A DNA stretch of 64,000 bases. Source: Utricularia gibba. Its lineage: Eukaryota > Plantae > Magnoliophyta. Position numbers and translations under genes: made by a program. Positions within the stretch are counted from its first letter, which is position 1; the number at the start of each line of letters is the position of its first letter. Below the pieces are notes generated by a model, which ran no database searches, had not been told where the DNA came from, and worked only from the letters and a program-made list of their open reading frames with translations. Below are positions 15,708 to 55,226 of this stretch, in pieces. The stretch lies in contig CM007992.1 of NCBI GenBank assembly GCA_002189035.1, positions 1,984,001 through 2,048,000 of the forward strand, in the 5' to 3' direction.

Positions 15708-16095
15708 GTTTGGTGTTCGAAAATCGATTAAGAGTCCTTCAAATCCTCTTGTTTCAGCTTTAATTGCTCCTATTAAGAAATAGGTGCCTTGTTAGTCGTT
15801 TTCCAAACACGGTTTCCCCCATTGATGTATATGAAATACTCAATATTCTTTATCTATCTGCAATGTGAACATCTGTTAGAAAATGTTGAGGGGTTGTGGA
15901 CCCACACTCTTAGTAACATGGTTTTAATTATGGGATTCATGGCTAATTATGTCAGATATATCTGCGGCATCTTTGAAAGTAAGCCAAACACAAAAGATGA
16001 GGGAAACATGTTTATACATCATTTGGTGCGGGTTTGTAGGTGGTGGTTGGAAAATATCTCTTATGATCACTACAGATGAACTTGGACAATACATG

Positions 16096-16873
16096 TGATG
16101 TGACTCTCTAATCTAAAGAGTTCAGAAACCCACGAATAATAGGTAATTTTGAAGCTTAGAAAGGAACCCATCCAAGTCTACCATCAAAAGAATGAATTAG
16201 GAGACAAACTTCAGAAGGAGAATGAATTGGAATTAATAGTCCTAGGAAACCACAAGCTCAAAGTTTGATAAATCAAGAGCAAATACGTAAATGAAATAAA
16301 CTAAAGGTCCTCAAGGAGTAAATCTCTAGAGTTCTTCTACTCTATAAGTGGTATCTAACATTTCTGAGCCCAAACTACATAAAAAGGAACACCTAACAAG
16401 TGCTAAGCACACATCAAAGTCGAGAACATGTTTTGAGCTCTAAGATAGATTCAAGCTAAAGTAGTTGGACTCATTTAATGGTAAGTGTTCAAGCTCAAGT
16501 TTGCTTTCAATAGTGTTGAGTAGACTGTTGAGTGTATCTTCAGTCATCTTGCTCTTACTCCATGTCATTAGTTCTAGTGAAATGATCTTACGCTCCAAAT
16601 TGCTCACTTCTGCAACATTCTAATCAATGCTTAAATACTCTTCATCATCTTCTTAGGGCTCATCATCTCCCCCTTCTTTAGGTAGATTCGTCCCTGAATC
16701 TATTTCGAAAAGGGACAAATTAGCAACATTGAAAGTTGAATGAACAGAATACTCACGTGGCAAAAGTATCTTGTATGCATTATTATTCAGGTGCTCAACA
16801 ACTAGAAAAGAGCCATGTCCACGAGGAAGAAGTTTTGACTTTATCTTGGTGGAATACCTCTCCTTCCTAAGAT
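16096..16873 (-). mobile_element. CRM-type 3' LTR (16096-16665), PPT and integrase C-terminus
   Basis: Copy of 4084-4861 at +12012. The integrase continues across the copia insertion at 24435. Confidence 0.87.
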
Positions 16874-24434: not shown

Positions 24435-24685
24435 AAGATAAAGCCAAACCCATTCTCCAGGTTCAAATATAACTTTGCGTCTCCTTTTGTTTGCTGCTGT
24501 TGTGTAGTTTGCATTTCTAGATTCAATCTTTTGTTTTACCTTTTTATGTAATCTTCTGATTGCTTCAGTCCTTTTATTGCCATCTAAACTAATTTTTTCA
24601 TCACAATACAAAGATAACATATCCAAAGGTGTTAGAGGATTAGAGTCATAAACCACTTCAAATGGAAATAATTTACTAGAGTCAT
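24435..24685 (-). pseudogene. CRM integrase fragment
   Basis: PFEVVYDSNPLTPLDML…ANKRRRKVIFEPGEWVWLYL matches the CRM integrase post-core region. Confidence 0.8.
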
Positions 24686-27600
24686 AAGCTGTACTGAAGT
24701 TTAGTTGTGTACCCATTGCATCTTGCAAGCCTTTCCAGAATCTGGACACAAATCTGGTATCCCGGTCTGAAACGATGCTGAGGGGTACGCCATGAAGCCT
24801 GACTAATTCTGAAATGTACCTTTCAGCGAACTTATCAATTCCATCAATTTCCTTGATCGCTAGGAAGTGAGCCACCTTCGTTAGTCTATCCACAATCACC
24901 CATATTGCATTATGCTTCTTGAATGTTCTTGGCAGCCCCATTACGAAATCCATTGTGACATGATCAAACTTCCATTCCGGAATTTGCAGTGGCTGTAGTT
25001 CACCTCCCGGCCTCTGGTGTTCAGCTTTGACTCTTTGGCAAGTGTCACACTTTGCAACGAACTCAGCCACACTTCTCTTCATACCGGGCCACCACCACAT
25101 AGCTCTCATGTCCCTATACATTTTGTTGCTTTCGGGATGCACTGAAAACGCAGAACTGTGAGCTTCCCCAAGATTTTCTGCTTCAATTCAGGTTTATTCG
25201 CCACAGCGATCCTATCTTTAAACCTCAAAACACCCGCTAACGAAATGTTGAAGTCCCCTGCTTTGTTTCCTCTCAGGACGTTCTGCTTGTACTTCTAAAT
25301 TTCTGTTTCAAACATCTGTGCCTCATTAGCTTCTTCAACATGTGTGGGAGTAGCTAGGAGAGTGTGAAGCCGCACTTCTTTATCTGTGTCAAGCATCTCC
25401 ATTCTTAGTTCAGAAAGTCGCTTGATTAACAATGCGACTACCCTCCCCTGACTCTTCCTACTAAGTGCATCAGCAACGGCATTGGCCTTACCAGGGTGAT
25501 ACTTGATCTCAAGATCATAGTCCTTAAGAAGCTCCAGCCATCTTCTTTGTCTCATGTTCAATTCTTTTTGCGTGAGTATATGTTTCAAACTCTGATCATC
25601 TGTATAAACCTCACACCTTGAACCATAGTGGTAGTGCTGCCAAATTTTGAGAGCAAACACAACTGCACCCAGCTCCAGGTCGTGGGTTGCATAGTTTGTC
25701 TCATGAGGTTTCAACTTCCGAGAGGCATATGCAATCACTTTGCCCTACTGCATCAAGACACACCCCAACCCTTCCTTGGATGCATCACTGTAAACCACAA
25801 AATCCTCATCCATCCTAGGTAATAGAAGTACAGGTGCTGTGGTGAGCTTTTCTTTCAGTAGCAGGAAGCTCCTCTCACATTGCTCACTCCAGTCGTATTT
25901 TGCTCCCTTCTTCGTCAATTCTGTGAGAGGGCCGGCTATCTTTGAAAACCCCTCAATAAACTTCCTGTAATATCCAGCCAAGCCCAAGAAGCTTCGAATT
26001 TCCTTCGGGCTTTCCGGTTGAGCCCACTCCTTAACTGCTGCAACCTTATCAGGATCAACCCTTATGCCATCAGTAGATACTATGTGGCCAAGGAAGGCAA
26101 TACTGGACAGCCAAAGGTCACACTTGCTCAGTTTTCCGTAAAGTTGGTTCTCTCTCATATGCTGCAGTACAACTCTTAGGTGTTCACCATGTTGCTGCTC
26201 ATCCTTTGAATAAATCAGAATATCATCAATGAATACAACAACAAAGTTGTCCAAGTATGGCTTGAAAACTCTATTCATCAGATCCATAAACACGGCTGGC
26301 GCAATTGGTTAACCCAAAGGGAACCACTGTGCACTCAAAATGCCCATACCTAGTTCTAAAAGCTGTCTTAGGAATATCCTTCTCCTTCACACGCAATTGA
26401 TGGTACCCTAAGCGTAAATCCAATTTGGAGAAAACCGTAGCTCCTTGCAGTTGGTCAAATTAATCATCTATTCTTGGTAATGGATACTTATTCTTTACTG
26501 TCACCTTGTTGAGCTCTCGGTAATCATAGCACAGTCTCAAACTTCCATCTTTCTTCTTGACAAATAGAACTGGCGCTCCCCATGGTGATGTACTTGGCCT
26601 TATGCGTCCCATGTCTAGTAGATCACGAAGTTGCTTTTTTAGCTCGATCAATTCTCGAGGTGCCATGCGGTACGGAGCCTTGGATATTGGTTGGGCGTTT
26701 GGCAGCAACTCAATTGACAGCTCCACTTTCCTTTTTGGAGGATGACTTGGTAGCTCATCAGGGAAGACATCACTAAACTCATTTACAACCGGAATGTCCT
26801 CTATCCTCTTCTCCTTAGGTTGTGTGGTGATGAAAGCTATGTACCCCATGCACTCACTAATTGGTGTGTTGGGGAAATTATCTGAAGACACATCCTTCTC
26901 AAACCGTAGTAGCTTTCCATCCTTTAGTCTTAGTTCCCACAATCGACTAACACCTCATACTTAGCCAGCCAATCCATTCCCAAGATTACATCAAAGTCAA
27001 AGAGTTCTAACTCCCTTAAATCCACTGGAAGCCACTTGCTACAAATTTCAACCAGGCATTGGGGGTATATCTTCCTAGATCTAAGTTTATGAGGCCCTGC
27101 TGGGGTTACCACCTTTGTAAACACATCCTCAGCTACCTTATCTAATAAGCGACCAAATCTCTTGGACACAAACGAATGGGTAGCACCACAATCAATTAAC
27201 ACATAAGCCGGAATGAATTCAACTAAGAGTATACCTGTGATAACATTATCATGCTTAGCGCTCTCTGCTTCAGTCAATGCAAACACTCGAGCCTTTGTGG
27301 TCCCCCTATCCTTCCTCGTACCTCCCTGCACCGTTCCAGCATTCCTAGTTGGGCAACCAGCAATTAGATGACCTTCCTTTCCGCAAGCAAAGCATGCCCG
27401 AGTCCCAAGCCGACATTCTCCTGGATGTCGCTTATGATGCCTAGTACACTCTGGGTAAGCAGTAGGAGTAGGGCCTGTCGGTTTGAAAGGTCGTTTGGAT
27501 GGTAGGTTCCCTCCCCTGATTTCCAAAGGTCGTTTCCTTTGCATTGCCAGATCCTTCCTCCTCAAATCAGTCTCCACCCTTATGGCTATGCCCACAACAT

Positions 27601-27745
27601 CTGCAAAATTTGTTCTTTTGTGTCCTGCAAATGCCATCCTTATCCTTCCATCCAAACCCTCAATGAACTTGTGTGTTTTCGCCTTTTCTTCAGCCATGAG
27701 TTCTTTTACTTGGCGTTGGATTTCTTTGGTTTCTTCAGGGTTGGC
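24686..27745 (-). mobile_element. Tekay/Del-like Ty3/gypsy internal fragment (gag knuckle, protease, RT, RNase H, integrase core), no LTRs, frameshifted
   Basis: ORFs 26930-27697 (LIDCGATHSF), 26460-26942 (PYRMAP…[16 protein letters not shown]), 25745-26293 (FIDDILIYS), 25295-25738 ([14 protein letters not shown]) and 24351-25142 (KAEHQRPGG…IPEWK). Confidence 0.87.
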
Positions 27746-29370
27746 CCCTCACTATTTTCACATCACTCATTTTTGCAATAAGGCATTCCACTTCTTTTTT
27801 TCTCACAACTCCTTCATTCACGTCTTTCTTTTCATTTTTTTTTTTAGATGTTCTTTTCCTTTCTTGTGATATCTCTTTTTTAAGAGTAGGAAGATGGAGT
27901 TTATCCACCATGAGAGTACTAGCTACGTTTGTGCAACTGCCTCCATCGATTATTAGGCTGCAAACTTTTCCATTCACAAAGTTTTCATGTTGCTCCTCCA
28001 TTGGCTTAGCATCCATGGCTAAAGTCCTTGTTACCAAACTTTCACGAATGACAGGTTGTTGTTCACCATCATCTATCTCTTGTTCTTCACTTCCACCTTC
28101 ACTCTCAACTTCAGATTCAACATCTCCTGAATCCCTTAGAATCATGGTCCTCTTGTTTGGGCATTCTTAAGCAATATGACCATGGCCAAGACATGTGAAA
28201 CACTTGATATTTCGTGTTAGTCCAGATGACTTAAATACTCTTTCCTGGTTTCGAGTATCTGAAGTGCCCTCTTTCATCGGTCCAAACTTCGTTGATTTCC
28301 TAAATGAAGGATAACTTGTTTTCTTCCAGCAACATTCCACGAAGTATAGGGTTTTGAATGGTCTCTATGTTGTCCTTTAGATTTTAATTGCTTCTCAATC
28401 TTTATTGCAACGTGCAACATATCTTCAATCTCCACATAGTGTTGCAACTCGTCCACATGAGAGATTTCCTTATTGAAACCATAGAGCTTCTACAAGTTTT
28501 GGTGTTGATCTCTTTGCTAATGGCTGGGAATGAACCTTTTTCTCACGATCCTCTTCATTTCATCCCAAGTTCGAATTGATTCTTCATCATTTCGTCTTCT
28601 GTTTAGTACTATTTTATCCCACCAACTTATGGCATAATATGTAAATTCAACAACATCAAGCTTAATCTTCTTGGCTTCAGAATAGTTGTGACAGTCAAAC
28701 ACATGCTCCACACGAGTCCCCCACTCCAAGTAGGCATTTGGATCGTTTTTCCCTTGAAAATAAGGGATTTTCATCTTGATGTTGTCAAATTCCTTGTATA
28801 CACGTGTGTGTCTACCCCTTGGTCTTTCATCATATGTTACATCACGATTTCACCTCCAATTTCTTTGAGATCTTCGTTGTATATCATCACCACCAGATAA
28901 ATCATACTCATCAGGGATGTTGTTGTTGTTTCTCCTTTGTTCACCATCCCTTGCCTCTTCAGCTTCAGATTCTGAATCTTTTTCTAGTTGAGAATTCCTT
29001 TTGCTATGGTGTGTTGGAACTCTTGTTCTTCCATGGGAAACACTGTCTTCTTCTTACTTTTTGATGTTTTTGAGAGACTCATCATGTTCCTCTAATTTGA
29101 AGTTCATTTGTTCCATGCATCTTTGCAATCTCCTAAATTCACTTTGCATTGCATTAAGTACGAAACGAACATCCATAGCACCTGATTCTTCTGCAGGGTT
29201 GTTTGAGCTGGACATCCTACTATCAGAATAAAGTGTAGACAAAAGCAAGGAAAGAGAACAACAAAAGAAGAATTGAAGTAAAATAAAATAAAAGGAGAGA
29301 ATTTCCAAACCTCAAGTCCTCTTGAACTTTAAGACTCAATAAACCTTAAATAATCAATCTAAGTGTGGTT
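27746..29370 (-). mobile_element. CRM-type gag-protease fragment with leader, degenerate
   Basis: KIPYFQGKNDPNAYLEW…HNYSEAKKIKL, LIIDGGSCTN. It is homologous to 9252-11184. Confidence 0.85.
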
Positions 29371-30409
29371 TGTTGTTGCAAGAAAAATAGAGTCTTGGGA
29401 AGTAACAAAAAGGTAATGCTTATGAGATCACCTTAGATGAAAAACGACTCATGAACAATAATAATGACCGAAAACCTAATGACACGCATTCCTAGTAGGG
29501 TTTATATATACCCAATACCTAGGTTACCCAACAGTGGGCCACAATCATTGAAAACACACAAAAAGCCCAACAACTCAAATCCAACACTTCCATGCTCGAA
29601 CCCAATACCTTTTTTATCTGAAATATGACATTATGACACATGTTTAGTTCTTCCAATCACCTTCAAGGTTTGGATTGAGGCTGATCTCCAACATTCCCCC
29701 CCAGACCGAGATCTCCCAATTTTAGAAAGTCTTCCATAGTCATGAGATTCATGTTCTTCCTTGCTAACTCAAACTGAACTCTGTTCAAACCTTTGGTGAG
29801 CCCATCAGCAAGCTGATTCCCACTCTCAACATATTGCACTTTAATCTTCTTCTCCTTGATGTAATTCCTTATGACATGATATCTGATTCTTATATGTTTG
29901 GCTTTGCTGAAGTTCGTCAGATCCTTGGCAATGGAGATTGCAGCTCGATTATCCATAAGCAGATGTGTAGCTTCCTGTTGTATGAATCCAAGTTCGTTTA
30001 GCATCTGCCTGAACCAAACACAATAGTTCGAAGCATGTGCTGCTGAGATGTATTCTGCTTCAGCTGTTGATTGTGCTACCACTTTTTGTTTCTTCGAAAA
30101 CCAGACTACAGGGCACTTATTTAAGAAGAAGAGTGCACCAGATGTACTCTTGCTATCTTCAGCCATACCATAATCACTATCTGAGTAGGCTCTAAGTTTC
30201 AAGACTGGTTTTTCACCTTCATAGGGATAGAACAATCCGAAATCAGTAGATGATTTTATGTACCTGAAAGCTCTTTTCACACCTGCCATGTGAGTTGTTG
30301 TTGGTTTGTTGAGGAAGCGAGATAAGACGTTTACACAAAAACACAAGTCAGGCCTTGAATGCTGGAGATAAATGAGGCTTCCAATCATACTTCTATAAGT
30401 AGTGGCATC

Positions 30410-33400
30410 TGTTGGAGATCAGCCTCAATCCAAAGTTTGAAGGTGATTGGAAGCACTAATCTTGTGTCATAATGTTATATTTCAGATAAAAGGTGTTGAG
30501 TTCGAGCATGGAAGTGTTGAATTCGAGTTGTTGGGCTTTTTGTGTGTTTTCAATAATTGTGGCCCACTGTTGGGTAACCTAGGTATTGGGTATATATAAA
30601 CCCTACTAGGAATGCGTGTCAATTAGGGTTTTGGTCATTCTTATTGTTCATGAGTCGTTTTTCATTCAAAGTGATCTCAGAAGCATTACCTTTTTGTTAC
30701 TTCCCAAGACTCTCTTTTTCTTGCATCAACATGGTATCGGAGCAGTAAGGTTCTCAAACCTGTGCTCGTTTCAGTATTTTATTTACCGTTCAGCGTTTTT
30801 TACTTGGTGGATTACAAAATATCAACCCAAAGCTTTTCAAGCGGTGGCTATGATGGCATCTGGTAGAGGACCTCCAATATTTGATGGTTCAGAGTATGGA
30901 AGTTGGGTCAAAAAGATGCGCAGCTACCTTCGGGTCAGAAAGATTTGGGATGTTGTTGAAAGGGAGATTCCGGCTATTACAATAACAAGCAAATCCACAT
31001 CAGAACAGCAAGAGGAAGCTGAGTATCTTCAACAGAGAAAAGATGAAGCAATGGATGCCTTGTATCAAGCCATCTCTGAACATCTATTTGATGATATTGC
31101 AGAGTGTCAATCAGCAAAAGAAATATGGAATACTCTCAAATCCCATTATGAAGGCGATGCCAAACTCAGAGAGATATTATGCAAAAACAAGCTGGAGGAC
31201 TTTGAGAGGAACAAAATGTTAGACAATGAAACCATACAAGTCTATTATGAACGTACTGCGAAGCTTGTGAAGGAGATTCGAGGATTGGGGAAAAACTTGA
31301 GGATCAAAAGGTGATTAGCAAGGCAATCATGAGCCTACCTGCAAGATTCGAGCCAAAGTTATGTGCATTTGAGACAGAAAGAAAAATCTTTGACATTATT
31401 GAAGGAAAGCTCCATCAGCTGTATCCTGAATATCCTGTTACACCAGAGCCAACATTTAGAGAGTTCATGATTGAGTTGCAATCTACAGAAAAGAGATTGG
31501 AACTAAGAGATGGTTATGAAGTTGAGAAAACTTATGGTGAAGCTGCTCTCCTCACCAAAATGCAGAATATGAATGTAACCTCAGGTGCAATTAACAATGT
31601 CAAAGATGTCAAGTCAACAGCCATCAAACAATCACCAACGTCAATCCAAACATCAACGATGGGCAATCAGAAGTGCAGGCATTGTGACAAATCCAACCAT
31701 AAGAGTGAAGATTGTTGGACTTTAAGCACAAATGCTTGCAAGCATTGCAACAAACAGAATCACAGGAGTGAGTTTTGTTGGTGGAAGCCTGATGCTTTGT
31801 GCACGAAATGCAATCAAAGAGGCCATCTTGATAAGGTATGTGGAATGTCCAATCCAATAAAAGTTGAACATAACAAGAAGACTACTTCCAGGGAAGAGAA
31901 ATCACATGCATCCTTTACCTACTTTGAAGATGAGCCAGAAATATCTTTTGAAAATCCTTTTGAGTATGAGTGTGCTCTAATGACAGTAGCCTCAGATGCT
32001 AAAGATTGGTACTTGGACTCTGGTGCCTCCTATCATGTATGTTGTGATACAAGGTCATTTCTCAAGCTTGAAAGGATTGGGAAGGAGGTAAGCACGTGCA
32101 CTGGTGAAAATATTGGCACTGTGGGCAAAGGAAGCATTTTACTCTTGCTAAAAGAAGGAATTGTTCAAGTTGATGATGTTTATTATTCACCAAACCTCAA
32201 ACAGAACCTGTTGAGCTTTGGCCAATTGAGCAGGCAAGGTTTTGACATTGAGCTGATGAAGGATGCTGGTGGTATAACCACTAAAGTTAAGGTTGCTGAT
32301 CCAAAAACGAAGATTGAATTCCATGCTGTGTTGACCACCTACAACCTCTACCAAATCATGGTCAGTGATCATAAAAGTTGTATTTTCTCACTTCAGGATC
32401 AAAGCAGCCTTTGGCACAAACGTTTTGGGCACTATAGCTTCAACAATTTGAAAATATTGCAGAAGAATAAGGAAGTACTGGAATTGAAAGACATCAAGTT
32501 TGCTAATGCCATATGTGAAGTGTGCCATCAAGGTAAGCAATGTAGAAAGCCGTTTTATTCCAGTGATTCAGTAGCAAAGGAGAAATTAGAGCTTGTGCAT
32601 ACAGATGTTTGTGGACCATTTAAGGAATGTTCATTAGGGGGGAGTAGATATTTTGTTACATTCATTGATGATTATTCACGTTATTGTTGGGTTTACTTTC
32701 TTAAAAGCAAGTCAGAAGTTCATCATATCTTTCGAAAATTCAAAGTGATGATTGAGAATCAGAGTGGATGCTCTTTGAAGATGATTAGATCAGACAATGG
32801 AGGCGAATTCTACAATAATAGCATGAGAATGTTCTGTGAAAATGAGGGAATCATGCATCAATTCACCGTACCATATTCTCCACAACAGAATGGTGTATGT
32901 GAAAGGAGAAACAGAACAATCCTTGATATGTCAAGATGTCTATTGTTTGAGAAAGATCTTCCTGTAAATTTCTGGGCTGAAGCGGTATCTACATCTGTAT
33001 ATCTATTGAACTTGCTTCCCTCAAGGGCGATTAGTGGAAAAACCGCGCATGAAAAATGGCATGGTTATATTAAAAAGGTTGATCATCTCAGAATCTTTGG
33101 TAGTCTGTGTTTTACTCATGTACCAGACCAAAAACGAGGAAAACTTGATAAGAAATCTGCATCTGGTGTATTTGTTGGTTATAGCAACACTACCAAGGGA
33201 TATAAAGTTTATTTACCTCAACATAAGAAATTTATTTTCAGCCATGATGTCACTTTTGATGAAGGTGCAAGGTATACTTTAATTGATAATTGCATTTCTC
33301 TGAATGATGTAGAAGCTTATAAAAGTGATGGAAGGCATAGCACCCATGGGAAAGGAGACCTCTGGACACACATGTCTCAAAACTTCTCTTCCAGGAATTC

Positions 33401-35711
33401 AACAAACCAAGAAACTTCAGAACTCGTTCATGAAGATTCAAATCAAGTAAATGATCAGCATTCAGATGAGAATTTTCCAGCTCCAGAGGAGGAGAAGGCC
33501 AATGATCTACATTCAGATGGGAATTTCGAAATCCCAGAAGAGGAGCAAGGCACGAATGCAGAAGACTCATCAACAGATGAATCTGATGGAGAGGAACCTG
33601 ATACTGATGATGAAGATTATTACCCATCTGATCGTGATTGGCAAAGGAGGAAACGCAAAAACATCAGAGATTCAATAGATAATGAAGATAGTCATGTTAC
33701 TGACATTAAACGAAGCAAAAGAAACAAGGCTCCTAAAATCAGTTTCTCCAAGTTGAATGATGATGTCCAAGATGCTGTAGCTGATATTTTGGCTGGATTA
33801 TTGACAGGAGATCCGACATCATTTGAAGTGGCTGTACAAAATCCGAAATGGAGAGAGGCCATGAAGGAAGAAATGAACTCTATACTTGAAAATGAAACAT
33901 GGGAGTTAGTTGATAAACCCAAGGATAGAGGTTTCAAACCTATTGGCCTCAAGTGGTTATTCAAAACCAAGATAAATGCAGATGGCTCTATCAACAAATA
34001 TAAGGCTAGATTAGTAGCCAAGGGATATAGTCAGATCAAAGGAATAAATTTTCATGAGATTTTTGCACCAGTAGCAAGATTTGACACGATTAAAGTACTT
34101 CTTGCCATCTCAGCTGCTCATGGATGGAAAGTGCATCACATGGATGTCAAGACTGCGTTCTTAAATGGTGTGTTGGAGGAGGTTGTTTTTGTTGAACAAC
34201 CAAAGGGCTTCGAAGTGTCAGGTCATGAAGACAAGGTATTGAAGCTAAAGAAATCTCTCTATGGGTTGAAGCAAGCTCCTAGAGCATGGAATGAACGCAT
34301 GGATAACTTTCTCCAGGGTATTGGTTTCAGAAAAACATATAGTGATTACTCATTATATGTTAAAGGAAAAGAAGATGATCGTTTATTTATTAGCTTATAT
34401 GTGGATGATCTTATGATTACCTCAGGTAATGAAAGGAAGATTGAGGAATTCAAAGCTCTACTCAAAAATGAATTCAAGATGACTGACCTTGGAATGATGT
34501 CCTATTATCTAGGCATGGAAATTCATCAATTTGAAGGTGTTGGAACATTCATATCTCAGAAAAAGTACTGTAATGAACTTCTTGAAAGGTTTGGGTTCAA
34601 AGATGTCAATCCTTCAAAAACGCCTTTGGATTACAAACAAGTGATTGGAGAGAACAATCAGGGAAAGAATGTGGATGCCATTACATATAGAAGTATGATT
34701 GGAAGCCTCATTTATCTCCAGCATACAAGGCCTGACTTGTGTTTTTGTGTAAATGTCTTATCTCGCTTCCTCAACAAACCAACAACAACTCACATGGCAG
34801 CTGTGAAAAGAGCTTTCAGGTACATAAAATCTACTATTGATTTCGGATTGTTCTATCCCTATGAAGGTGAAAAACCAGTCTTGAAACTTAGAGCCTACTC
34901 AGATAGTGATTATGCTATGGCTGAAGATAGCAAGAGTACATATGGTGCACTCTTCTTCTTAAATAAGAGTCCTGTAGTCTGGTTTTCGAAGAAACAAAAA
35001 GTCGTAGCACAATCAACAGCTGAAGCAGAATACATCTCAGCAGCACATGCTTCGAACTATTGTGTTTGGTTGAGGCAGATGCTAAACGAACTTGGATTCA
35101 TACAAAAGGAAGCTACACATCTGCTTATGGATAATCGAGCTGCAATCTCCATTGCCAAAGATCCAACGAACTTCAGCAAAGCCAAGCACATAAGAATCAG
35201 GTATCATGTCATAAGGAATTACATCAAGGAGAAGAAGATTAAAGTGCAGTATGTTGAGAGTGGGAATCAGCTTGCTGATGGGCTCACCAAAGGTTTGAAC
35301 AGAGTTCAGTTTGAGCTAGCAAGGAAGAACATGAATCTCATGACTATAGAAGACTTTCTCAAGTTGGGAGATCTCGGTCTGGGGGGGAGTGTTGGAGATC
35401 AGCCTCAATCCAAAGTTTGAAGGTGATTGGAAGCACTAATCTTGTGTCATAATGTTATATTTCAGATAAAAGGTGTTGAGTTCGAGCATGGAAGTGTTGA
35501 ATTCGAGTTGTTGGGCTTTTTGTGTGTTTTCAATAATTGTGGCCCACTGTTGGGTAACCTAGGTATTGGGTATATATAAACCCTACTAGGAATGCGTGTC
35601 AATTAGGGTTTTGGTCATTCTTATTGTTCATGAGTCGTTTTTCATTCAAAGTGATCTCAGAAGCATTACCTTTTTGTTACTTCCCAAGACTCTCTTTTTC
35701 TTGCATCAACA
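30410..35711 (+). mobile_element. very young full-length copia, LTR-B x2 (30410-30731, 35390-35711), TSD GCATC
   Basis: The LTRs are identical by eye. GCATC lies at 30405-30409 and 35712-35716. The PBS is TGGTATCGGAGC (30732-30743), and a PPT precedes 35390. Confidence 0.97.
30850..35420 (+). pseudogene. gag-pol: copia gag-pol with a single -1 frameshift (G run at ~31287-31290)
   Basis: ORFs 30616-31314 and 31311-35420. GATTGGGGAAAAA here versus GATTGGGGGAAAAA in the other copies. Confidence 0.88.
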
Positions 35712-38700
35712 GCATCCACATTCTTTCCCTGATTGTTCTCTCCAATCACTTGTTTGTAATCCAAAGGCGTTTTTGAAGGATTGACATCTTTGAACCCAAA
35801 CCTTTCAAGAAGTTCATTACAGTACTTTTTCTGAGATATGAATGTTCCAACACCTTCAAGCTGATGAATTTCCATGCCTAGATAGTAAGACATCATTCCA
35901 AGGTCAGTCATTTTGAATTCATTTTTGAGCAGAGCTTTGAATTCCTCAATCTTCCTTTCATTACCTGAGGTAATCATAAGATCATCCACATATAAGCTAA
36001 TAAATAAACGATCATCTTCTTTTCCTTTAACATATAGTGAGTAATCACTATATGTTTTTCTGAAACCAATACCCTGAAGAAAGTTATCCATGCGTTCATT
36101 CCATGCTCTAGGAGCTTGCTTCAACCCATAGAGAGATTTCTTTAGCTTCAATACCTTGTCTTCATGACCTGACACTTCGAAGCCCTTTGGTTGTTCAACA
36201 AAAACAACCTCCTCCAACACACCATTTAAGAACGCAGTCTTGACATCCATGTGATGCACTTTCCATCCATGAGCAGCTGAAATGGCAAGAAGTACTTTAA
36301 TCGTGTCAAATCTTGCTACTGGTGCAAAAACCTCATGAAAATTTATTCCTTTGATCTGACTATATCCCTTGGCTACTAATCTAGCCTTATATTTGTTGAT
36401 AGAACCATCTGCATTCATCTTGGTTTTGAATAACCACTTGAGGCCAATAGGTTTGAAACCTCTATCCTTGGGTTTATCAACTAACTCCCATGTTTCATTT
36501 TCAAGTATAGAGTTCATTTCTTCCTTCATGGCCTCTCTCCATTTCGGATTTTGTACAGCCACTTCAAATGATGTCGGATCTCCTGTCAATAATCCAGCCA
36601 AAATATCAGCTACAGCATCTTGGACATCATCATTCAACTTGGAGAAACTTATTGTAGGAGCCTTGTTTCTTTTGCTTCGTCTAATGTCAGTAACATGACT
36701 ATCTTCATTATCTATTGAATCTCTGATGTTTTTGCGTTTCCTCCTTTGACAATCACGATCAGATGGGTAATAATCTTCATCATCAGTATCAGGTTCCTCT
36801 CCATCAGATTCATCTGTTGATGAGTCTTCTGCATTCGTGCCTTGCTCCTCTTCTGGGATTTCGAAATTCCCATCTGAATGTAGATCATTGGCCTTCTCCT
36901 CCTCTGGAGCTGGAAAATTCTCATCTGAATGCTGATCATTTACTTGATTTGAATCTTCATGAACGAGTTCTGAAGTTTCTTGGTTTGTTGAATTCCTGGA
37001 AGAGAAGTTTTGAGACATGTGTGTCCAGAGGTCTCCTTTCCCATGGGTGCTATGCCTTCCATCACTTTTATGAGCTTCTACATCATTCAGAGAAATGCAA
37101 TCATCAATTAAAGTATACCTTGCACCTTCATCAAAAGTGACATCATGGCTGAAAATAAATTTCTTATGTTGAGGTAAATAAACTTTATATCCCTTGGTAG
37201 TGTTGCTATAACCAACAAATACACCAGATGCAGATTTCTTATCAAGTTTTCCTCGTTTTTGGTCTGGTACATGAGTAAAACACAGACTACCAAAGATTCT
37301 GAGATGATCAACCTTTTTAATATAACCATGCCATTTTTCATGCGCGGTTTTTCCACTAATCGCCCTTGAGGGAAGCAAGTTCAATAGATATACAGATGTA
37401 GATACCGCTTCAGCCCAGAAATTTACAGGAAGATCTTTCTCAAACAATAGACATCTTGACATATCAAGGATTGTTCTGTTTCTCCTTTCACATACACCAT
37501 TCTGTTGTGGAGAATATGGTACGGTGAATTGATGCATGATTCCCTCATTTTCACAGAACATTCTCATGCTATTATTGTAGAATTCGCCTCCATTGTCTGA
37601 TCTAATCATCTTCAAAGAGCATCCACTCTGATTCTCAATCATCACTTTGAATTTTCGAAAGATATGATGAACTTCTGACTTGCTTTTAAGAAAGTAAACC
37701 CAACAATAACGTGAATAATCATCAATGAATGTAACAAAATATCTACTCCCCCCTAATGAACATTCCTTAAATGGTCCACAAACATCTGTATGCACAAGCT
37801 CTAATTTCTCCTTTGCTACTGAATCACTGGAATAAAACGGCTTTCTACATTGCTTACCTTGATGGCACACTTCACATATGGCATTAGCAAACTTGATGTC
37901 TTTCAATTCCAGTACTTCCTTATTCTTCTGCAATATTTTCAAATTGTTGAAGCTATAGTGCCCAAAACGTTTGTGCCAAAGGCTGCTTTGATCCTGAAGT
38001 GAGAAAATACAACTTTTATGATCACTGACCATGATTTGGTAGAGGTTGTAGGTGGTCAACACAGCATGGAATTCAATCTTCGTTTTTGGATCAGCAACCT
38101 TAACTTTAGTGGTTATACCACCAGCATCCTTCATCAGCTCAATGTCAAAACCTTGCCTGCTCAATTGGCCAAAGCTCAACAGGTTCTGTTTGAGGTTTGG
38201 TGAATAATAAACATCATCAACTTGAACAATTCCTTCTTTTAGCAAGAGTAAAATGCTTCCTTTGCCCACAGTGCCAATATTTTCACCAGTGCACGTGCTT
38301 ACCTCCTTCCCAATCCTTTCAAGCTTGAGAAATGACCTTGTATCACAACATACATGATAGGAGGCACCAGAGTCCAAGTACCAATCTTTAGCATCTGAGG
38401 CTACTGTCATTAGAGCACACTCATACTCAAAAGGATTTTCAAAAGATATTTCTGGCTCATCTTCAAAGTAGGTAAAGGATGCATGTGATTTCTCTTCCCT
38501 GGAAGTAGTCTTCTTGTTATGTTCAACTTTTATTGGATTGGACATTCCACATACCTTATCAAGATGGCCTCTTTGATTGCATTTCGTGCACAAAGCATCA
38601 GGCTTCCACCAACAAAACTCACTCCTGTGATTCTGTTTGTTGCAATGCTTGCAAGCATTTGTGCTTAAAGTCCAACAATCTTCACTCTTATGGTTGGATT

Positions 38701-39978
38701 TGTCACAATGCCTGCACTTCTGATTGCCCATCGTTGATGTTTGGATTGACGTTGGTGATTGTTTGATGGCTGTTGACTTGACATCTTTGACATTGTTAAT
38801 TGCACCTGAGGTTACATTCATATTCTGCATTTTGGTGAGGAGAGCAGCTTCACCATAAGTTTTCTCAACTTCATAACCATCTCTTAGTTCCAATCTCTTT
38901 TCTGTAGATTGCAACTCAATCATGAACTCTCTAAATGTTGGCTCTGGTGTAACAGGATATTCAGGATACAGCTGATGGAGCTTTCCTTCAATAATGTCAA
39001 AGATTTTTCTTTCTGTCTCAAATGCACATAACTTTGGCTCGAATCTTGCAGGTAGGCTCATGATTGCCTTGCTAATCACCTTTTGATCCTCAAGTTTTTC
39101 CCCCAATCCTCGAATCTCCTTCACAAGCTTCGCAGTACGTTCATAATAGACTTGTATGGTTTCATTGTCTAACATTTTGTTCCTCTCAAAGTCCTCCAGC
39201 TTGTTTTTGCATAATATCTCTCTGAGTTTGGCATCGCCTTCATAATGGGATTTGAGAGTATTCCATATTTCTTTTGCTGATTGACACTCTGCAATATCAT
39301 CAAATAGATGTTCAGAGATGGCTTGATACAAGGCATCCATTGCTTCATCTTTTCTCTGTTGAAGATACTCAGCTTCCTCTGTTCTGATGTGGATTTGCTT
39401 GTTATTGTAATAGCCGGAATCTCCCTTTCAACAACATCCCAAATCTTTCTGACCCGAAGGTAGCTGCGCATCTTTTTGACCCAGCTTCCATACTCTGAAC
39501 CATCAAATATTGGAGGTCCTCTACCAGATGCCATCATAGCCACCGCTTGACAAGCTTTGGGTTGATACTTGGTAGTCCACCAGGTAAAAAACGCTGAACG
39601 GTATATAAAATACTGAAACGAACACAGGTTTGAGAACCTTACTGCTCTGATACCATGTTATTGCAAGAAAAATAGAGTCTTGGGAAGTAACAAAAAGGTA
39701 ATGCTTATGAGATCACCTTAGATGAAAAACGACTCATGAACAATAATAATGACCGAAAACCTAATGACACGCATTCCTAGTAGGGTTTATATATACCCAA
39801 TACCTAGGTTACCCAACAGTGGGCCACAATCATTGAAAACACACAAAAAGCCCAACAACTCAAATCCAACACTTCCATGCTCGAACCCAATACCTTTTTT
39901 ATCTGAAATATGACATTATGACACATGTTTAGTTCTTCCAATCACCTTCAAGGTTTGGATTGAGGCTGATCTCCAACA

Positions 39979-41674
39979 AAAGCATGCAATTAGTTACCTC
40001 AGTTTGCCCATCGGTTTGAGGGTGTCATGTTGTTGAGTATAACAGTTTAGTGCCAAGTTTACTCCAAGGAACTCTCCAAAAGTGACTGAGAAACCTTGCA
40101 TCTCAGTTTTATGGCAGGGAATAAAGTGTGCCATCTTTGAAAACCTGTCCACATCAACAAAAATTGAATCTCTACCCCTTTGTTTACGAGGTAAGCCTAA
40201 AACAAAGTCCATAGAAATGTCCACCCATGGTTGAGAAGGAGTAGGGAGTGGAGTATACAAACCATTAGGGGCAGTGGTTGATTTAGCCTTCCTACAAGAG
40301 ATACATCTAGAACAAATTCTTTCAACATCCCTTCTCATGTGTGGCCAAAAGAAATGTTGGGTGAGAGTATCAAGAGTCTTTTTAACACAAAAATGTCCCA
40401 TTAGTCCCCCACCATGAGTTTATCTAAGAATCAAATCACGTATGGAGCAAGAAGGAATGCACAGCCTATCTTTCCTATAAAGAAAACCATCTTTCCTGGA
40501 GAATAGTCCAGATGGAGCAAGTTCACATGCCTTATAAATATCCCCAAAATCGTGATCATAAACATATAAGTCAATGATGGTAGCAAATCCAAGAAAATTC
40601 TTGCATCAAGATTAGCTAAAAGAGTGTACTTTCGAGATAAAGCATCACCAACCACATTCTCCTTACCTTTCTTGTATTTGATCACATATGGGAATGTGTC
40701 AATGAATTCCACCCACTTAGCATGTCTTCTATTCAGCTTTCCTTGAGCCTTCAAATGTTTGAGAGACTCATGATTAGTGTGTATCACGAACTCCTTGTAT
40801 CAGCTTTCCTTGAGCCTTTGTCATATGTTCGATAGTTGAGGGTGGCACCATGAAGCTTCTCACTAAAATAAGCAAGTGGACGTCCTTTTTGCATCAACAC
40901 AGCACCAATGCCTAAACCTGATGCATCACATTCAATTTCAAAAGTATGAGAAAAATTTGGAAGTGTTAAGAGAGGTGTTGAGCAAAGCTTATTCTTGAGT
41001 TGTTTGAAAGCATGTTCCTGCTCATCTCCCCAATGAAATGCATGATTTTTCTTGATCAACTGTGTGAGGGGTGCTGCTATAGACCTGAAGTCCCTAACAA
41101 ACCGTCTATAGAAACTTGCTAAGCCATGAAAACTCTTAACTTCACCCACTGATGTAGGTGTTGGCTATTTTTTGATTGCTCTTACTTTCTCTTCATCCAC
41201 AGCTACTCCTGCATCACTTACAACATATCCAAGAAAAGAGACACTATTTGTGCAAAAGACACACTTTCTAATATTAGCAAACAACTTCTCTTTTCTAAGA
41301 GTATCTAACACATCTTTCAAATGCCCTACATGTTCCTCAATACTTTTACTATAAATCAGAATATTATCAAAATAAACAACAACAAATCTACCTATAAGAG
41401 GCCTAAGAACGTGATTCATCAATCTCATAAAGGTGGTAGGAGCATTGGTTAACCCAAAAGGCATAACAACCCACTCATACAAACCAAACTTAGTTTTAAA
41501 AGCAGTTTTCCACTCATCACCTTCCTTCATTCTAATCTGATGATATCCATTTCTCAAATCAATCTTACTAAAAACACAAGCACCATGCAATTCATCAAGC
41601 ATATCTTCAAGTCTAGGGATAGGATGTCTATACTTGATTGTGATGTTGTTGATGGCGCGACAATCAGTGCACAT
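39979..41674 (-). mobile_element. CRM-type pol fragment (RT, RNase H, integrase N-terminus/core), frameshifted
   Basis: [29 protein letters not shown]…[11 protein letters not shown]…[29 protein letters not shown]…GLYTPLP. Confidence 0.9.
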
Positions 41675-44600
41675 TTACATACTCGAACACAACATTTACA
41701 TACTTGAATCCAACACCTTTTCTTTATCTAAAACATGACATTATGACACAAGATTAATACTTCCAATCACCTTCAACCTTTGGATTGAGTCTGATCTCCA
41801 ACACCCCCCCCCCCCCCCGACCGATATCTCCCAACTTGAGAAAGTCTTCCATAGTCATGAGATTCATGTTCTTCCTTGCTAACTCAAACTGAACTCTGTT
41901 CAAACCTTTGGTGAGCCCATTAGCAAGCTGATTCACACTCTCAACATACTGCACTTTAATCTTCTTCTCCTTGATGTAATTCCTAATGACATGATACCTG
42001 ATTCTTATGCGTTTTGCTTTGCTGAAGTTCGTTGGATCCTTGGCAATGAATATTGCAGCTCGATTATCCATAAGCAGATGCGTAGCTTCCTTTTGTAAGA
42101 ATCCAAGTTCGTTTAACATCTACCTCAACCAAACACAATAGTTCGAAGTATGTGCTGCTGAGATATATTCTGCTTCAGCTGTTAATTGTGCTACCACCTT
42201 TTGTTTCTTCGAAAACCAGACTACAGGACTCTTATTTAAGAAGAAGAGTGCACCAGATGTACTCTTGCTATCTTCAGCCATACCATAATCACTATCTGAG
42301 TAGGCTCTAAGTTTCAACACTGGTTTTTCACCTTCATAGGATAGAACAATGCGAAATCAATAGTAGATTTTATGTACCTGAAAGCTCTTTTCACAGCTGC
42401 CATGTGAGTTGTTGATTTGTTGAGGAAGCGAGATAACACATTTACACAAAAACACAGGTCAGGCCTTGTATGCTGTAGATAAATGAGACTTCCAATCATA
42501 CTTTTGTAAGTAGTAGCATCCACATTCCTTCCCTGATTATTCTATAGAATTACCTGTTTATAATCCAAAGGGGTTTTTGAAGGATTGACATCTTTGAACC
42601 CAAACATTTCAAGAAGTTCATTACAGTACTTTTTCTGAGATATGAATGTTCCAACACCTGCCAGTTGATAAATTTCCATGCCTAGATAGTAGGACATCAT
42701 TCCAAGGCCAGTCATCTTGAATTCATTTTTGAGAAGGGCTTTGAATTCTTCAATCTTCCTTTCATCACCTGAAGTAATCATTAGATCATCCACATATAGG
42801 CTAACAAATAAACGATCATCTCTCTTTCCTTTAACGTACAGTGAGTAATCACTATATGTTTTTCTGAAACCAATACCCTGGAGAAAGTTATCTATGTGTT
42901 CATTCCATGCTCTAGGAGCTTGCTTCAACCCATAAAGAGATTTCTTTAGCTTCAATACTTTGTCTTCATGACCTGACACTTCGAAGCCCTTTGGTTGTTC
43001 AACAAAAACAACCTCCTCCAACACACCATTCAAGAACGCAGTCTTAACATCCATGTGATGCACTTTCCATCCATGAGCAGCTGAAATGGCAAGAAGTACT
43101 TTAATCGTGTCAAATCTTGCTACTGGTGCAAAAACCTCATGAAAATTTATTCCTTTGATCTGACTATATCCCTTGGCTACTAATCTAGCCTTATATTTGT
43201 TGATAGAACCATCTGCATTCATCTTGGTTTTGAATAACCACTTGAGGCCAATAGGTTTGAAACCTCTATCCTTGGGTTTATCAACTAACTCCCATGTTTC
43301 ATTTTCAAGTATAGAGTTCATTTCTTCCTTCATGGCCTCTCTCCATTTCGGATTTTGTACAGCCACTTCAAATGATGTCGGATCTCCTGTCAATAATCCA
43401 GCCAAAATATCAGCTACAGCATCTTGGACATCATCATTCAACTTGGAGAAACTTATTGTAGGAGCCTTGTTTCTTTTGCTTCGTCTAATGTCAGTAACAT
43501 GACTATCTTCATTATCTATTGAATCTCTGATGTTTTTGCGTTTCCTCCTTTGACAATCACGATCAGATGGGTAATAATCTTCATCATCAGTATCAGGTTC
43601 CTCTCCATCAGATTCATCTGTTGATGAGTCTTCTGCATTCGTGCCTTGCTCCTCTTCTGGATTTCGAAATTCCCATCTGAATGTAGATCATTGGCCTTCT
43701 CCTCCTCTGGAGCTGGAAAATTCTCATCTGAATGCTGATCATTTACTTGATTTGAATCTTCATGAACGAGTTCTGAAGTTTCTTGGTTTGTTGAATTCCT
43801 GGAAGAGAAGTTTTGAGACATGTGTGTCCAGAGGTCTCCTTTCCCATGGGTGCTATGCCTTCCATCACTTTTATGAGCTTCTACATCATTCAGAGAAATG
43901 CAATCATCAATTAAAGTATACCTTGCACCTTCATCAAAAGTGACATCATGGCTGAAAATAAATTTCTTATGTTGAGGTAAATAAACTTTATATCCCTTGG
44001 TAGTGTTGCTATAACCAACAAATACACCAGATGCAGATTTCTTATCAAGTTTTCCTCGTTTTTGGTCTGGTACATGAGTAAAACACAGACTACCAAAGAT
44101 TCTGAGATGATCAACCTTTTTAATATAACCATGCCATTTTTCATGCGCGGTTTTTCCACTAATCGCCCTTGAGGGAAGCAAGTTCAATAGATATACAGAT
44201 GTAGATACCGCTTCAGCCCAGAAATTTACAGGAAGATCTTTCTCAAACAATAGACATCTTGACATATCAAGGATTGTTCTGTTTCTCCTTTCACATACAC
44301 CATTCTGTTGTGGAGAATATGGTACGGTGAATTGATGCATGATTCCCTCATTTTCACAGAACATTCTCATGCTATTATTGTAGAATTCGCCTCCATTGTC
44401 TGATCTAATCATCTTCAAAGAGCATCCACTCTGATTCTCAATCATCACTTTGAATTTTCGAAAGATATGATGAACTTCTGACTTGCTTTTAAGAAAGTAA
44501 ACCCAACAATAACGTGAATAATCATCAATGAATGTAACAAAATATCTACTCCCCCCTAATGAACATTCCTTAAATGGTCCACAAACATCTGTATGCACAA

Positions 44601-46781
44601 GCTCTAATTTCTCCTTTGCTACTGAATCACTGGAATAAAACGGCTTTCTACATTGCTTACCTTGATGGCACACTTCACATATGGCATTAGCAAACTTGAT
44701 GTCTTTCAATTCCAGTACTTCCTTATTCTTCTGCAATATTTTCAAATTGTTGAAGCTATAGTGCCCAAAACGTTTGTGCCAAAGGCTGCTTTGATCCTGA
44801 AGTGAGAAAATACAACTTTTATGATCACTGACCATGATTTGGTAGAGGTTGTAGGTGGTCAACACAGCATGGAATTCAATCTTCGTTTTTGGATCAGCAA
44901 CCTTAACTTTAGTGGTTATACCACCAGCATCCTTCATCAGCTCAATGTCAAAACCTTGCCTGCTCAATTGGCCAAAGCTCAACAGGTTCTGTTTGAGGTT
45001 TGGTGAATAATAAACATCATCAACTTGAACAATTCCTTCTTTTAGCAAGAGTAAAATGCTTCCTTTGCCCACAGTGCCAATATTTTCACCAGTGCACGTG
45101 CTTACCTCCTTCCCAATCCTTTCAAGCTTGAGAAATGACCTTGTATCACAACATACATGATAGGAGGCACCAGAGTCCAAGTACCAATCTTTAGCATCTG
45201 AGGCTACTGTCATTAGAGCACACTCATACTCAAAAGGATTTTCAAAAGATATTTCTGGCTCATCTTCAAAGTAGGTAAAGGATGCATGTGATTTCTCTTC
45301 CCTGGAAGTAGTCTTCTTGTTATGTTCAACTTTTATTGGATTGGACATTCCACATACCTTATCAAGATGGCCTCTTTGATTGCATTTCGTGCACAAAGCA
45401 TCAGGCTTCCACCAACAAAACTCACTCCTGTGATTCTGTTTGTTGCAATGCTTGCAAGCATTTGTGCTTAAAGTCCAACAATCTTCACTCTTATGGTTGG
45501 ATTTGTCACAATGCCTGCACTTCTGATTGCCCATCGTTGATGTTTGGATTGACGTTGGTGATTGTTTGATGGCTGTTGACTTGACATCTTTGACATTGTT
45601 AATTGCACCTGAGGTTACATTCATATTCTGCATTTTGGTGAGGAGAGCAGCTTCACCATAAGTTTTCTCAACTTCATAACCATCTCTTAGTTCCAATCTC
45701 TTTTCTGTAGATTGCAACTCAATCATGAACTCTCTAAATGTTGGCTCTGGTGTAACAGGATATTCAGGATACAGCTGATGGAGCTTTCCTTCAATAATGT
45801 CAAAGATTTTTCTTTCTGTCTCAAATGCACATAACTTTGGCTCGAATCTTGCAGGTAGGCTCATGATTGCCTTGCTAATCACCTTTTGATCCTCAAGTTT
45901 TTCCCCCAATCCTCGAATCTCCTTCACAAGCTTCGCAGTACGTTCATAATAGACTTGTATGGTTTCATTGTCTAACATTTTGTTCCTCTCAAAGTCCTCC
46001 AGCTTGTTTTTGCATAATATCTCTCTGAGTTTGGCATCGCCTTCATAATGGGATTTGAGAGTATTCCATATTTCTTTTGCTGATTGACACTCTGCAATAT
46101 CATCAAATAGATGTTCAGAGATGGCTTGATACAAGGCATCCATTGCTTCATCTTTTCTCTGTTGAAGATTCTCAGCTTCCTCTGTTCTGATGTGGATTTG
46201 CTTGTTATTGTAATAGCCGGAATCTCCCTTTCAACAACATCCCAAATCTTTCTGACCCGAAGGTAGCTGCGCATCTTTTTGACCCAGCTTCCATACTCTG
46301 AACCATCAAATATTGGAGGTCCTCTACCAGATGCCATCATAGCCACCGCTTGACAAGCTTTGGGTTGATACTTGGTAGTCCACCAGGTAAAAAACGCTGA
46401 ACGGTATATAAAATACTGAAACGAACACAGGTTTGAGAACCTTACTGCTCTGATACCATGTTATTGCAAGAAAAATAGAGTCTTGGGAAGTAACAAAAAG
46501 GTAATGCTTATGAGATCACCTTAGATGAAAAACGACTCATGAACAATAATAATGACCGAAAACCTAATGACACGCATTCCTAGTAGGGTTTATATATACC
46601 CAATACCTAGGTTACCCAACAGTGGGCCACAATCATTGAAAACACACAAAAAGCCCAACAACTCAAATCCAACACTTCCATGCTCGAACCCAATACCTTT
46701 TTTATCTGAAATATGACATTATGACACATGTTTAGTTCTTCCAATCACCTTCAAGGTTTGGATTGAGGCTGATCTCCAACA
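41675..46781 (-). mobile_element. chimeric copia: young 5' part (LTR-A 46459-46781, gag to RT start) fused to an old subfamily-D RT-RH and a truncated 3' LTR (to 41803)
   Basis: Diagnostic bases switch from D type (43046) to young type (43167). Confidence 0.88.
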
Positions 46782-48477
46782 AAAGCATGCAATTAGTTAC
46801 CTCAGTTTGCCCATCGGTTTGAGGGTGTCATGTTGTTGAGTATAACAGTTTAGTGCCAAGTTTACTCCAAGGAACTCTCCAAAAGTGACTGAGAAACCTT
46901 GCATCTCAGTTTTATGGCAGGGAATAAAGTGTGCCATCTTTGAAAACCTGTCCACATCAACAAAAATTGAATCTCTACCCCTTTGTTTACGAGGTAAGCC
47001 TAAAACAAAGTCCATAGAAATGTCCACCCATGGTTGAGAAGGAGTAGGGAGTGGAGTATACAAACCATTAGGGGCAGTGGTTGATTTAGCCTTCCTACAA
47101 GAGATACATCTAGAACAAATTCTTTCAACATCCCTTCTCATGTGTGGCCAAAAGAAATGTTGGGTGAGAGTATCAAGAGTCTTTTTAACACAAAAATGTC
47201 CCATTAGTCCCCCACCATGAGTTTATCTAAGAATCAAATCACGTATGGAGCAAGAAGGAATGCACAGCCTATCTTTCCTATAAAGAAAACCATCTTTCCT
47301 GGAGAATAGTCCAGATGGAGCAAGTTCACATGCCTTATAAATATCCCCAAAATCGTGATCATAAACATATAAGTCAATGATGGTAGCAAATCCAAGAAAA
47401 TTCTTGCATCAAGATTAGCTAAAAGAGTGTACTTTCGAGATAAAGCATCACCAACCACATTCTCCTTACCTTTCTTGTATTTGATCACATATGGGAATGT
47501 GTCAATGAATTCCACCCACTTAGCATGTCTTCTATTCAGCTTTCCTTGAGCCTTCAAATGTTTGAGAGACTCATGATTAGTGTGTATCACGAACTCCTTG
47601 TATCAGCTTTCCTTGAGCCTTTGTCATATGTTCGATAGTTGAGGGTGGCACCATGAAGCTTCTCACTAAAATAAGCAAGTGGACGTCCTTTTTGCATCAA
47701 CACAGCACCAATGCCTAAACCTGATGCATCACATTCAATTTCAAAAGTATGAGAAAAATTTGGAAGTGTTAAGAGAGGTGTTGAGCAAAGCTTATTCTTG
47801 AGTTGTTTGAAAGCATGTTCCTGCTCATCTCCCCAATGAAATGCATGATTTTTCTTGATCAACTGTGTGAGGGGTGCTGCTATAGACCTGAAGTCCCTAA
47901 CAAACCGTCTATAGAAACTTGCTAAGCCATGAAAACTCTTAACTTCACCCACTGATGTAGGTGTTGGCTATTTTTTGATTGCTCTTACTTTCTCTTCATC
48001 CACAGCTACTCCTGCATCACTTACAACATATCCAAGAAAAGAGACACTATTTGTGCAAAAGACACACTTTCTAATATTAGCAAACAACTTCTCTTTTCTA
48101 AGAGTATCTAACACATCTTTCAAATGCCCTACATGTTCCTCAATACTTTTACTATAAATCAGAATATTATCAAAATAAACAACAACAAATCTACCTATAA
48201 GAGGCCTAAGAACGTGATTCATCAATCTCATAAAGGTGGTAGGAGCATTGGTTAACCCAAAAGGCATAACAACCCACTCATACAAACCAAACTTAGTTTT
48301 AAAAGCAGTTTTCCACTCATCACCTTCCTTCATTCTAATCTGATGATATCCATTTCTCAAATCAATCTTACTAAAAACACAAGCACCATGCAATTCATCA
48401 AGCATATCTTCAAGTCTAGGGATAGGATGTCTATACTTGATTGTGATGTTGTTGATGGCGCGACAATCAGTGCACAT
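46782..48477 (-). mobile_element. duplicate of the CRM pol fragment 39979-41674
   Basis: Identical ORFs at +6803. Confidence 0.9.
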
Positions 48478-55152: not shown

Positions 55153-55226
55153 TGGGCTTTTTGTGTGTTTTCAATGATTGTGGCCCACTGTTGGGTAACC
55201 TAGGTATTGGGTATATATAAACCCTA
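55153..55226 (+). promoter_or_regulatory. LTR promoter: two site-II-like motifs (TGGGCT 55153-55158, GGCCCA 55182-55187), TATA box (55212-55221), telo-box AAACCCTA (55219-55226)
   Basis: The motifs are read directly from the sequence and are present in most LTR copies. Function is inferred. Confidence 0.6.

Follow-up and report, generated by a model that had tools for sequence, protein, structure and literature searches.

Background

How an active long terminal repeat (LTR) retrotransposon is first recognised and shut down in plants remains an open question. Mu killer (Muk) of maize is the only inverted repeat proven to be such a trigger in nature, and it concerns a DNA transposon; in published summaries of that work (Slotkin et al. 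2003, 2005; PMC8224964, PMC10827316), Muk is described as a partial inverted duplication of MuDR that is transcribed by read-through from a flanking gene, and its hairpin RNA, its 21-22-nt small interfering RNAs (siRNAs) and its heritable silencing in trans have been proven genetically. A copia element inserted antisense into its own kind has been proposed as a trigger only from one experimental Arabidopsis line. Here I analyse an arrangement of the latter type in a stretch of 64,000 nucleotides from Utricularia gibba (contig CM007992.1, positions 1,984,001 to 2,048,000; the whole stretch is called the window, and all positions are counted from its first letter). A Ty1/copia element at 30410-35711 lies antisense within a sister copy at 29371-39978, here called the host, and both together form a long, nearly perfect inverted repeat. 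I consider this to be, more likely than not, an ordinary and very recent reverse-orientation copia insertion into an older sister, with the inverted repeat and any input into silencing as its by-product.

In the Arabidopsis case, Trasser et al. (2024) described an antisense self-insertion of EVD (ATCOPIA93) in rdr6-EVD lines, and proposed two routes by which such a nest could produce double-stranded RNA (dsRNA): read-through into the antisense copy, and convergent transcription from the two 5' LTRs (PMC11624286). Inverted repeats transcribed by RNA polymerase II (Pol II) are also known as endoIR-siRNA loci, the transcripts of which are cut by DCL2, DCL3 and DCL4 to 21-, 22- and 24-nt siRNAs (Vaucheret and Voinnet 2023, PMC10827316). 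Autoinsertions of plant LTR retrotransposons, finally, have been surveyed in several genomes (Jedlicka et al. 2019, PMC6911290), where they were commoner in Ty3 than in copia families and preferred the 3' untranslated region (PMC6911290). Against this background, the locus in the window is a natural and structurally clean candidate for a class already on record; the silencing hypothesis attached to it has already been published for EVD (PMC11624286).

Results

The inner element (30410-35711, + strand) is a Ty1/copia element of 5,302 bp, the LTRs of which (30410-30731 and 35390-35711) are identical at 322/322 positions and have TG..CA ends (TGTTGG...AACA). It is surrounded by a perfect 5-bp target duplication, GCATC (30405-30409 and 35712-35716), and a G-rich polypurine tract with a G7 run lies directly 5' of its 3' LTR. 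The host, of the same family, lies on the - strand at 29371-39978; between its two LTRs (29371-29693 and 39656-39978) there is a single mismatch in 323 positions, 29375 versus 39660, and its polypurine run, GGGGGGGAA, adjoins the LTR. When the inner element was compared with the window by BLAST, 35712-39978 aligned to its positions 1-4269 and 29371-30409 to its positions 4265-5302; apart from the 5-bp duplication, the host is uninterrupted at the insertion site, which falls in its reverse transcriptase (RT) region. Pfam finds in the inner copy, in this order, Retrotran_gag_2, Pol_BBD, gag_pre-integrs, rve, SH3_retrovirus and RVT_2, and the host has the same domains in the same order. Because this is the order gag-protease-integrase-RT (RVT_2), both copies are Ty1/copia.

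An earlier note on this DNA, made from its letters alone, had read 30410-35711 as an element lying antisense in a sister copy, and the LTR ends, the GCATC duplication and the continuity of the host in the BLAST comparison all bear this out. Antisense self-insertion is supported as the origin of the arrangement, since the insertion is bounded by the duplication and the host is continuous across the site. Chance is excluded as the origin of the repeat, as 4 kb at 99% identity are beyond it. The features of the locus are the following.

29371-29693, - strand: host 3' LTR, 323 bp, 'B-type', 322/323 identical to 39656-39978
29694-30409, - strand: internal 3' piece of the host severed by the insertion (pol end, polypurine tract), ~96% identical to inner positions 4265-4980
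30405-30409, unstranded: left copy of the target-site duplication GCATC, same as 35712-35716
30410-30731, + strand: inner 5' LTR, 322 bp, 'A-type', with TATATATAAA at 30591-30600; ~7% different from the host LTR
30410-34678, + strand: left arm of the inverted repeat (inner LTR, gag, protease, integrase, most of RT), 98.7% identical to the reverse complement of 35712-39978
30616-31314, + strand: inner gag-frame open reading frame (ORF), 232 codons, Pfam Retrotran_gag_2 (E 1.5e-19); open from within the LTR, its start being a predicted one only
30732-30743, + strand: inner primer-binding site TGGTATCGGAGC, one base (30739) off the TGGTATCAGAGC of the host
31311-35420, + strand: inner pol-frame ORF, 1,369 codons, with protease, integrase and reverse transcriptase by Pfam (RVT_2, E 2e-86)
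34679-35711, + strand: spacer or loop, 1,033 nt (inner 3' pol end, polypurine tract, 3' LTR)
35390-35711, + strand: inner 3' LTR, with a TATA motif at 35571-35580 pointing into the host, antisense to it
35712-35716, unstranded: right copy of the target-site duplication GCATC, same as 30405-30409
35712-39978, - strand: right arm of the inverted repeat (host LTR, gag, protease, integrase, most of RT)
39644-39655, - strand: host primer-binding site TGGTATCAGAGC
39656-39978, - strand: host 5' LTR, with TATATATAAA at ~39786-39795; the promoter on which the silencing hypothesis depends

The primer-site motif is presumably the initiator-Met tRNA primer site of copia elements. The host form of it, TGGTATCAGAGC, also occurs in a truncated copy at 8842-8857 (reverse complement), the LTR of which is of the same type as that of the inner copy, which itself has TGGTATCGGAGC. 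A 241-aa ORF in the 3' piece of the host (29663-30388) has no Pfam match.

The full inverted repeat, 30410-34678 versus 35712-39978, measures 4.27 kb at 98.7% identity and reaches the LTR ends. The arms given in the earlier note, 30850-34678 and 35712-39537, are right for its near-perfect part (19 substitutions and two indels in 3,829 nt, ~99.4%), the repeat as a whole being longer; the loop, put there at ~1.03 kb, is 1,033 nt exactly. A perfect match of 2,001 bp (31287-33287 versus 37103-39103) lies within the arms, and LTR sequence is included in both of them (30410-30731 versus 39656-39978, ~93% identical).

With respect to the coding state of the pair, the earlier note was correct in part. 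It had taken the gag-integrase proteins of the two sisters to be essentially identical, and they do have the same tract and the same domains, but neither is whole, as each copy has a frame-breaking indel of its own (31286 in the inner copy, 39381 in the host). The run of G at 31282-31285 is four long in the inner copy, where the seven other copies in the window have five. Both lengths are present in the contigs of an independent public run (X7), and for this reason the four-G form is probably real rather than a polishing error. The 4-bp gap of the host at 39381 is common only to a further element at 41681-46781 (M in the following), where it lies at 46184; the 5' part of M is a tandem duplicate of the 5' part of the host. 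Both private indels lie within an otherwise identical tract. The reverse transcriptase of the host is further broken by the insertion, and a host ORF of 1,224 codons (35666-39340), with Pfam domains as in the inner copy, crosses the junction into the inner LTR. While the members of the pair are without a single long frame, the copy at 55029-60332 has one ORF of 1,608 codons (55233-60059), and no other copy in the window has its frame uninterrupted. The variant PQHKK, which the earlier note held to be private to the pair, is indeed present in the inner copy (33216) and in the host (37174) where five other copies have PQQKK, but it is found at 43977 as well, in the tandem duplicate of the host. 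By means of the private variants of the locus (the short G run, the 4-bp gap, the two LTR types and the junctions), small RNAs or transcripts could be traced to it.

Inner copy and host differ from each other in a mosaic fashion. The divergence amounts to ~7% in the LTRs, ~5% over 30732-30903, 0 substitutions over 30904-33287, 1.4% over 33288-34530, and 3.8% in the part of the host to the left of the insertion. In a windowed comparison, the inner LTR is close to that of the copy at 19071 (1 difference in 300), the body of which is ~2.5% off; more generally, the A-type LTRs at 8858, 19071 and 63649 are 99.7-100% identical to the inner LTR. The body of the inner copy matches the host, M and a copy at 1-1503, and over 32210-33100 also the copy at 55029, an element with LTRs of the other type. 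As inner LTR and inner body match different copies, the family is a swarm of recombinants between lineages, in which LTR and body types have been shuffled. Such a pattern is to be expected from template switching between co-packaged RNAs during reverse transcription, a process for which ONSEN has provided experimental proof (PMC5668417). On these comparisons, the likeness of the arms is inherited, not maintained.

Both elements are very young. Rates of 1.3e-8 and 7e-9 substitutions per site per year are commonly used for rice and Arabidopsis; with these, the single difference in 323 bp between the host LTRs corresponds to ~0.12-0.22 million years, and the absence of differences between the inner LTRs to a 95% upper bound of ~0.36-0.66 million years, all of these figures being rough.

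As for the prerequisites of a hairpin, the host 5' LTR has the TATA box of the other copies, and its context GGGTATATATAAACCC is the same in both LTR types, inner and host, at LTR position ~182-193, so that a leftward host transcript would begin near 39760. It would read the host in sense to 35712, and then the inner 3' LTR and body in antisense. The earlier note had given the same order, sense host and then antisense inner copy, for a transcript from the host 5' LTR, and both the orientation of the elements and the shared TATA box agree with it, the transcript being a predicted one. On the - strand of the loop (34679-35711) there is no AATAAA. The antisense strand of the inner copy has seven, the first of them ~290 nt into the arm, so that even early termination would leave a stem of ~290 bp; counts of AATAAA are, however, a weak predictor of read-through, plant poly(A) signals being too loose. 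Folded in silico, a test RNA of 1,493 nt (34449-35941, - strand) pairs its 230-nt ends over the 1,033-nt loop, and this 230-bp stem is found in the minimum-energy structure as well as in the centroid (-629.8 kcal/mol), which describes the fold only and not transcription. Judged by its orientation, the inner 3' LTR would point rightward into the host, antisense to it, and the inner 5' LTR toward the host promoter; given these opposed LTR promoters, convergent transcription could yield dsRNA without any hairpin.

The surroundings of the locus are dominated by the same family, which covers 47.2 of the 64 kb of the window (74%), the remainder being Ty3 relics. One relic (24435-29370, - strand) has protease, RT, RNase H and integrase, and another (39979-41680) has RNase H and integrase. 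The block is probably centromeric or pericentromeric. About 20 kb from the locus, the copy at 55029-60332 is itself nested, in sense orientation, inside a family member at 54220-61428, with a target duplication TAGAT, LTRs identical at 322/323 positions and a similar age. With this sense self-nest so close, the orientation of self-nests appears to be unbiased in the block. The earlier note had spoken of self-targeting, and although the inner element did insert into a sister, this is weak as a notion in a window of which the family makes up 74%, with a sense self-nest nearby.

The duplication that gave rise to the 5' part of M has a period of 6,803 bp (36242-49973), with a crossover in the copia RT, between host positions 36281 and 36242. 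The two 1,702-bp spacers, 39979-41680 and 46782-48483, are 100% identical, and only 2 positions differ in the duplicated 3.7 kb of copia, which makes the duplication very recent. The locus also shows how the block is being reshaped by unequal crossing-over.

The block is rich in further rearrangements, several head-to-head joints among them. At 8780-9179 (- strand), an LTR identical to the inner LTR and its primer-binding site are followed directly by the start of another LTR; this unusual LTR-PBS-LTR joint abuts the 3' LTR of a + copy at 5569-8789 and is a second inverted junction within the family. At 50492-50501 there is a head-to-head joint, where a - copy, truncated at inner coordinate 3101, adjoins the beginning of the 5' LTR of a + copy; as the missing half of the - copy is absent beyond the joint, it is a rearrangement and not a nest. 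The regions 2258-7060 and 14270-19070 make up a segmental duplication (period 12,012 bp) that contains several degraded copies of the family.

Discussion

In the explanation that I favour, integrase would have inserted a new copy, in reverse orientation, into the RT region of an older sister copy. In a block as saturated with one family as this one, a new insertion would meet a sister by default and its orientation would be a coin toss, which would make an antisense self-nest an expected by-product. The inner copy has one LTR type on a body common to the host lineage, and a recombining swarm of this sort would give near-identical arms, with no call for repair between them. Should the host 5' LTR be active, transcripts that read on into the inner copy could fold into hairpin RNA, the stem of which would measure 0.3 to 4 kb, and if the inner 3' or 5' LTR is active as well, convergent transcripts could pair over up to ~4 kb; either form of dsRNA would be diced and would add to the small-RNA silencing of the family. 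I judge that such a contribution would be real but redundant with the general silencing of heterochromatic repeats by RNA polymerase IV and RNA-directed DNA methylation, rather than the work of a dedicated off-switch.

Some observations weigh against so simple an account. The host is itself without a target duplication (TGGTT at 29366-29370, AAAGC at 39979-39983), and on its two sides it is bordered by different Ty3 relics, ~70% alike; the history of the locus must therefore be more complex than a single nesting, the host being either a recombinant between two copies or an element of which one original flank was lost or replaced. Furthermore, the locus is unusually favourable as a strong trigger, with a 2-kb perfect duplex, promoter motifs intact on both sides and LTR sequence in the arms. 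Finally, I consulted public-run contigs (Logan) over 30200-36100, from three runs of DNA and a fourth that is guessed to be RNA, and among the contigs listed none crosses 30409/30410 or 35711/35712, although contigs of this size (60-650 nt) are too short to be informative. In one of the DNA runs, X2, a contig passes at 35712 from the LTR terminus into other flanking sequence; this points to a further insertion with that LTR type elsewhere in the sample, and does not run counter to the one described here.

The lack of a bridging contig in the three DNA runs would also fit an assembly artefact, in which two sister copies were falsely joined in inverted orientation in a repeat-rich region. A window of which 74% belongs to one family with many near-identical copies invites such an error, and the 1-bp difference in the G run is of a kind that errors in long-read polishing can leave. 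In addition, an exact look-up of the ORF that spans the junction had no hit, and the junction 29-mers are absent from JGI metagenome contigs; these collections hold little plant DNA, and like the short contigs they leave such absences uninformative. On the other hand, both junctions lie exactly at LTR termini, with the same 5 bp on each side and a host that resumes where it stopped, and the four-G form recurs in the contigs of run X7. As a false join would not produce an exact LTR end together with a 5-bp duplication, misassembly is unlikely, to the point that I give it hardly any credence. Very little credence, too, is due to gene conversion between the inverted copies after the insertion, which would keep the repeat perfect in the manner of palindrome homogenisation. 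It could account for 2.4 kb (30904-33287) without a substitution between elements whose LTRs differ by 7%. However, M, which is without an inverted partner, is as identical to the inner copy over this tract as the host is, and the host equals M at 51/51 sites where it differs from the inner copy; on these two grounds arm-to-arm conversion was ruled against. The bodies of the copies at 1-1503 and 55029-60332 are likewise within 0-1 differences per 300 bp of the inner one, 18 substitutions persist in the arm beside the loop, and both private indels sit in the very tract that is otherwise perfect.

The locus could alternatively be a dominant silencer of the Mu killer type. A read-through hairpin from the host 5' LTR would then give rise to 21-22-nt (and 24-nt) siRNAs over the LTR and gag-RT, and these to heritable silencing in trans, making the nest the family's own off-switch. 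The LTR sequence within the inverted repeat (~93% identical), the conserved TATA box, the 2,001-bp perfect duplex, the absence of a canonical poly(A) motif from the loop and the stem that forms in silico all speak for this, as does the antisense self-nested EVD copia in a line that had gone over to transcriptional silencing (PMC11624286). Yet the run guessed to be RNA (X14) yielded a single family contig of 236 nt (32972-33207) at depth 2 and nothing across 35711/35712, and in the runs labelled with the same species and guessed to be RNA next to none of the sampled words were present. The repeat block is of a kind that is normally heterochromatic, other copies are equally young (55029, 8858, 19071 and 63649), so that an arrest of the family after the event is not visible, and the authors of the EVD study did not show the nested locus to be a source of siRNAs (PMC11624286). 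I consider a silencer of this type unlikely; a dominant killer role is possible at a low probability, some siRNA output from the locus being somewhat likelier. It is improbable as well, though conceivable, that a family piling up on itself inevitably makes antisense self-nests whose hairpin or convergent dsRNA, formed whenever the family is transcribed, would serve as a copy-number-dependent brake, and that a natural young copia killer of this kind ended the latest burst.

At present, the locus is first of all a well-documented structural example, and one that shows how a family evolves by recombination between lineages. Being fully sequenced, natural and very young, it would also be a good test object, if small-RNA, methylation and long-read RNA data are to be had for the species.

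Comparison with known systems

The locus resembles the autoinsertions known from plant genomes in that an element lies within an older copy of the same family, with a 5-bp target duplication; it differs from their general trend in that the family is copia and the site is in the RT coding region. With endoIR-siRNA loci it has in common a long, near-perfect inverted repeat, for which the same dicing is to be expected if it is transcribed by Pol II; those loci are defined by their small RNAs, whereas this one is known from sequence alone.

Both Muk and the present locus are rearranged derivatives of an active transposon with an inverted duplication that includes a terminal regulatory region, from which a long hairpin transcript is expected. 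Both 5' LTRs are held by the arms here, and it is in this structural feature only that the locus corresponds to the definition of Muk. Muk derives from a DNA transposon, whereas here two near-complete retrotransposons were brought together by integration, the putative promoter is the element's own LTR, and the likeness is one of structure only.

The closest parallel is the EVD nest. In both cases a Ty1/copia element lies antisense in a copy of its own, with LTRs and bodies facing each other, and siRNA output of the locus is a proposal in both; as in an EVD-type nest, a same-family element in reverse orientation is found in a host that is continuous across the site. The EVD insertion, however, was detected by discordant read pairs at a euchromatic site of an experimental line, in a plant in which EVD had just been silenced, whereas the present nest is fixed and natural, and stands assembled with its full sequence in a family-saturated block of a Lamiales genome.

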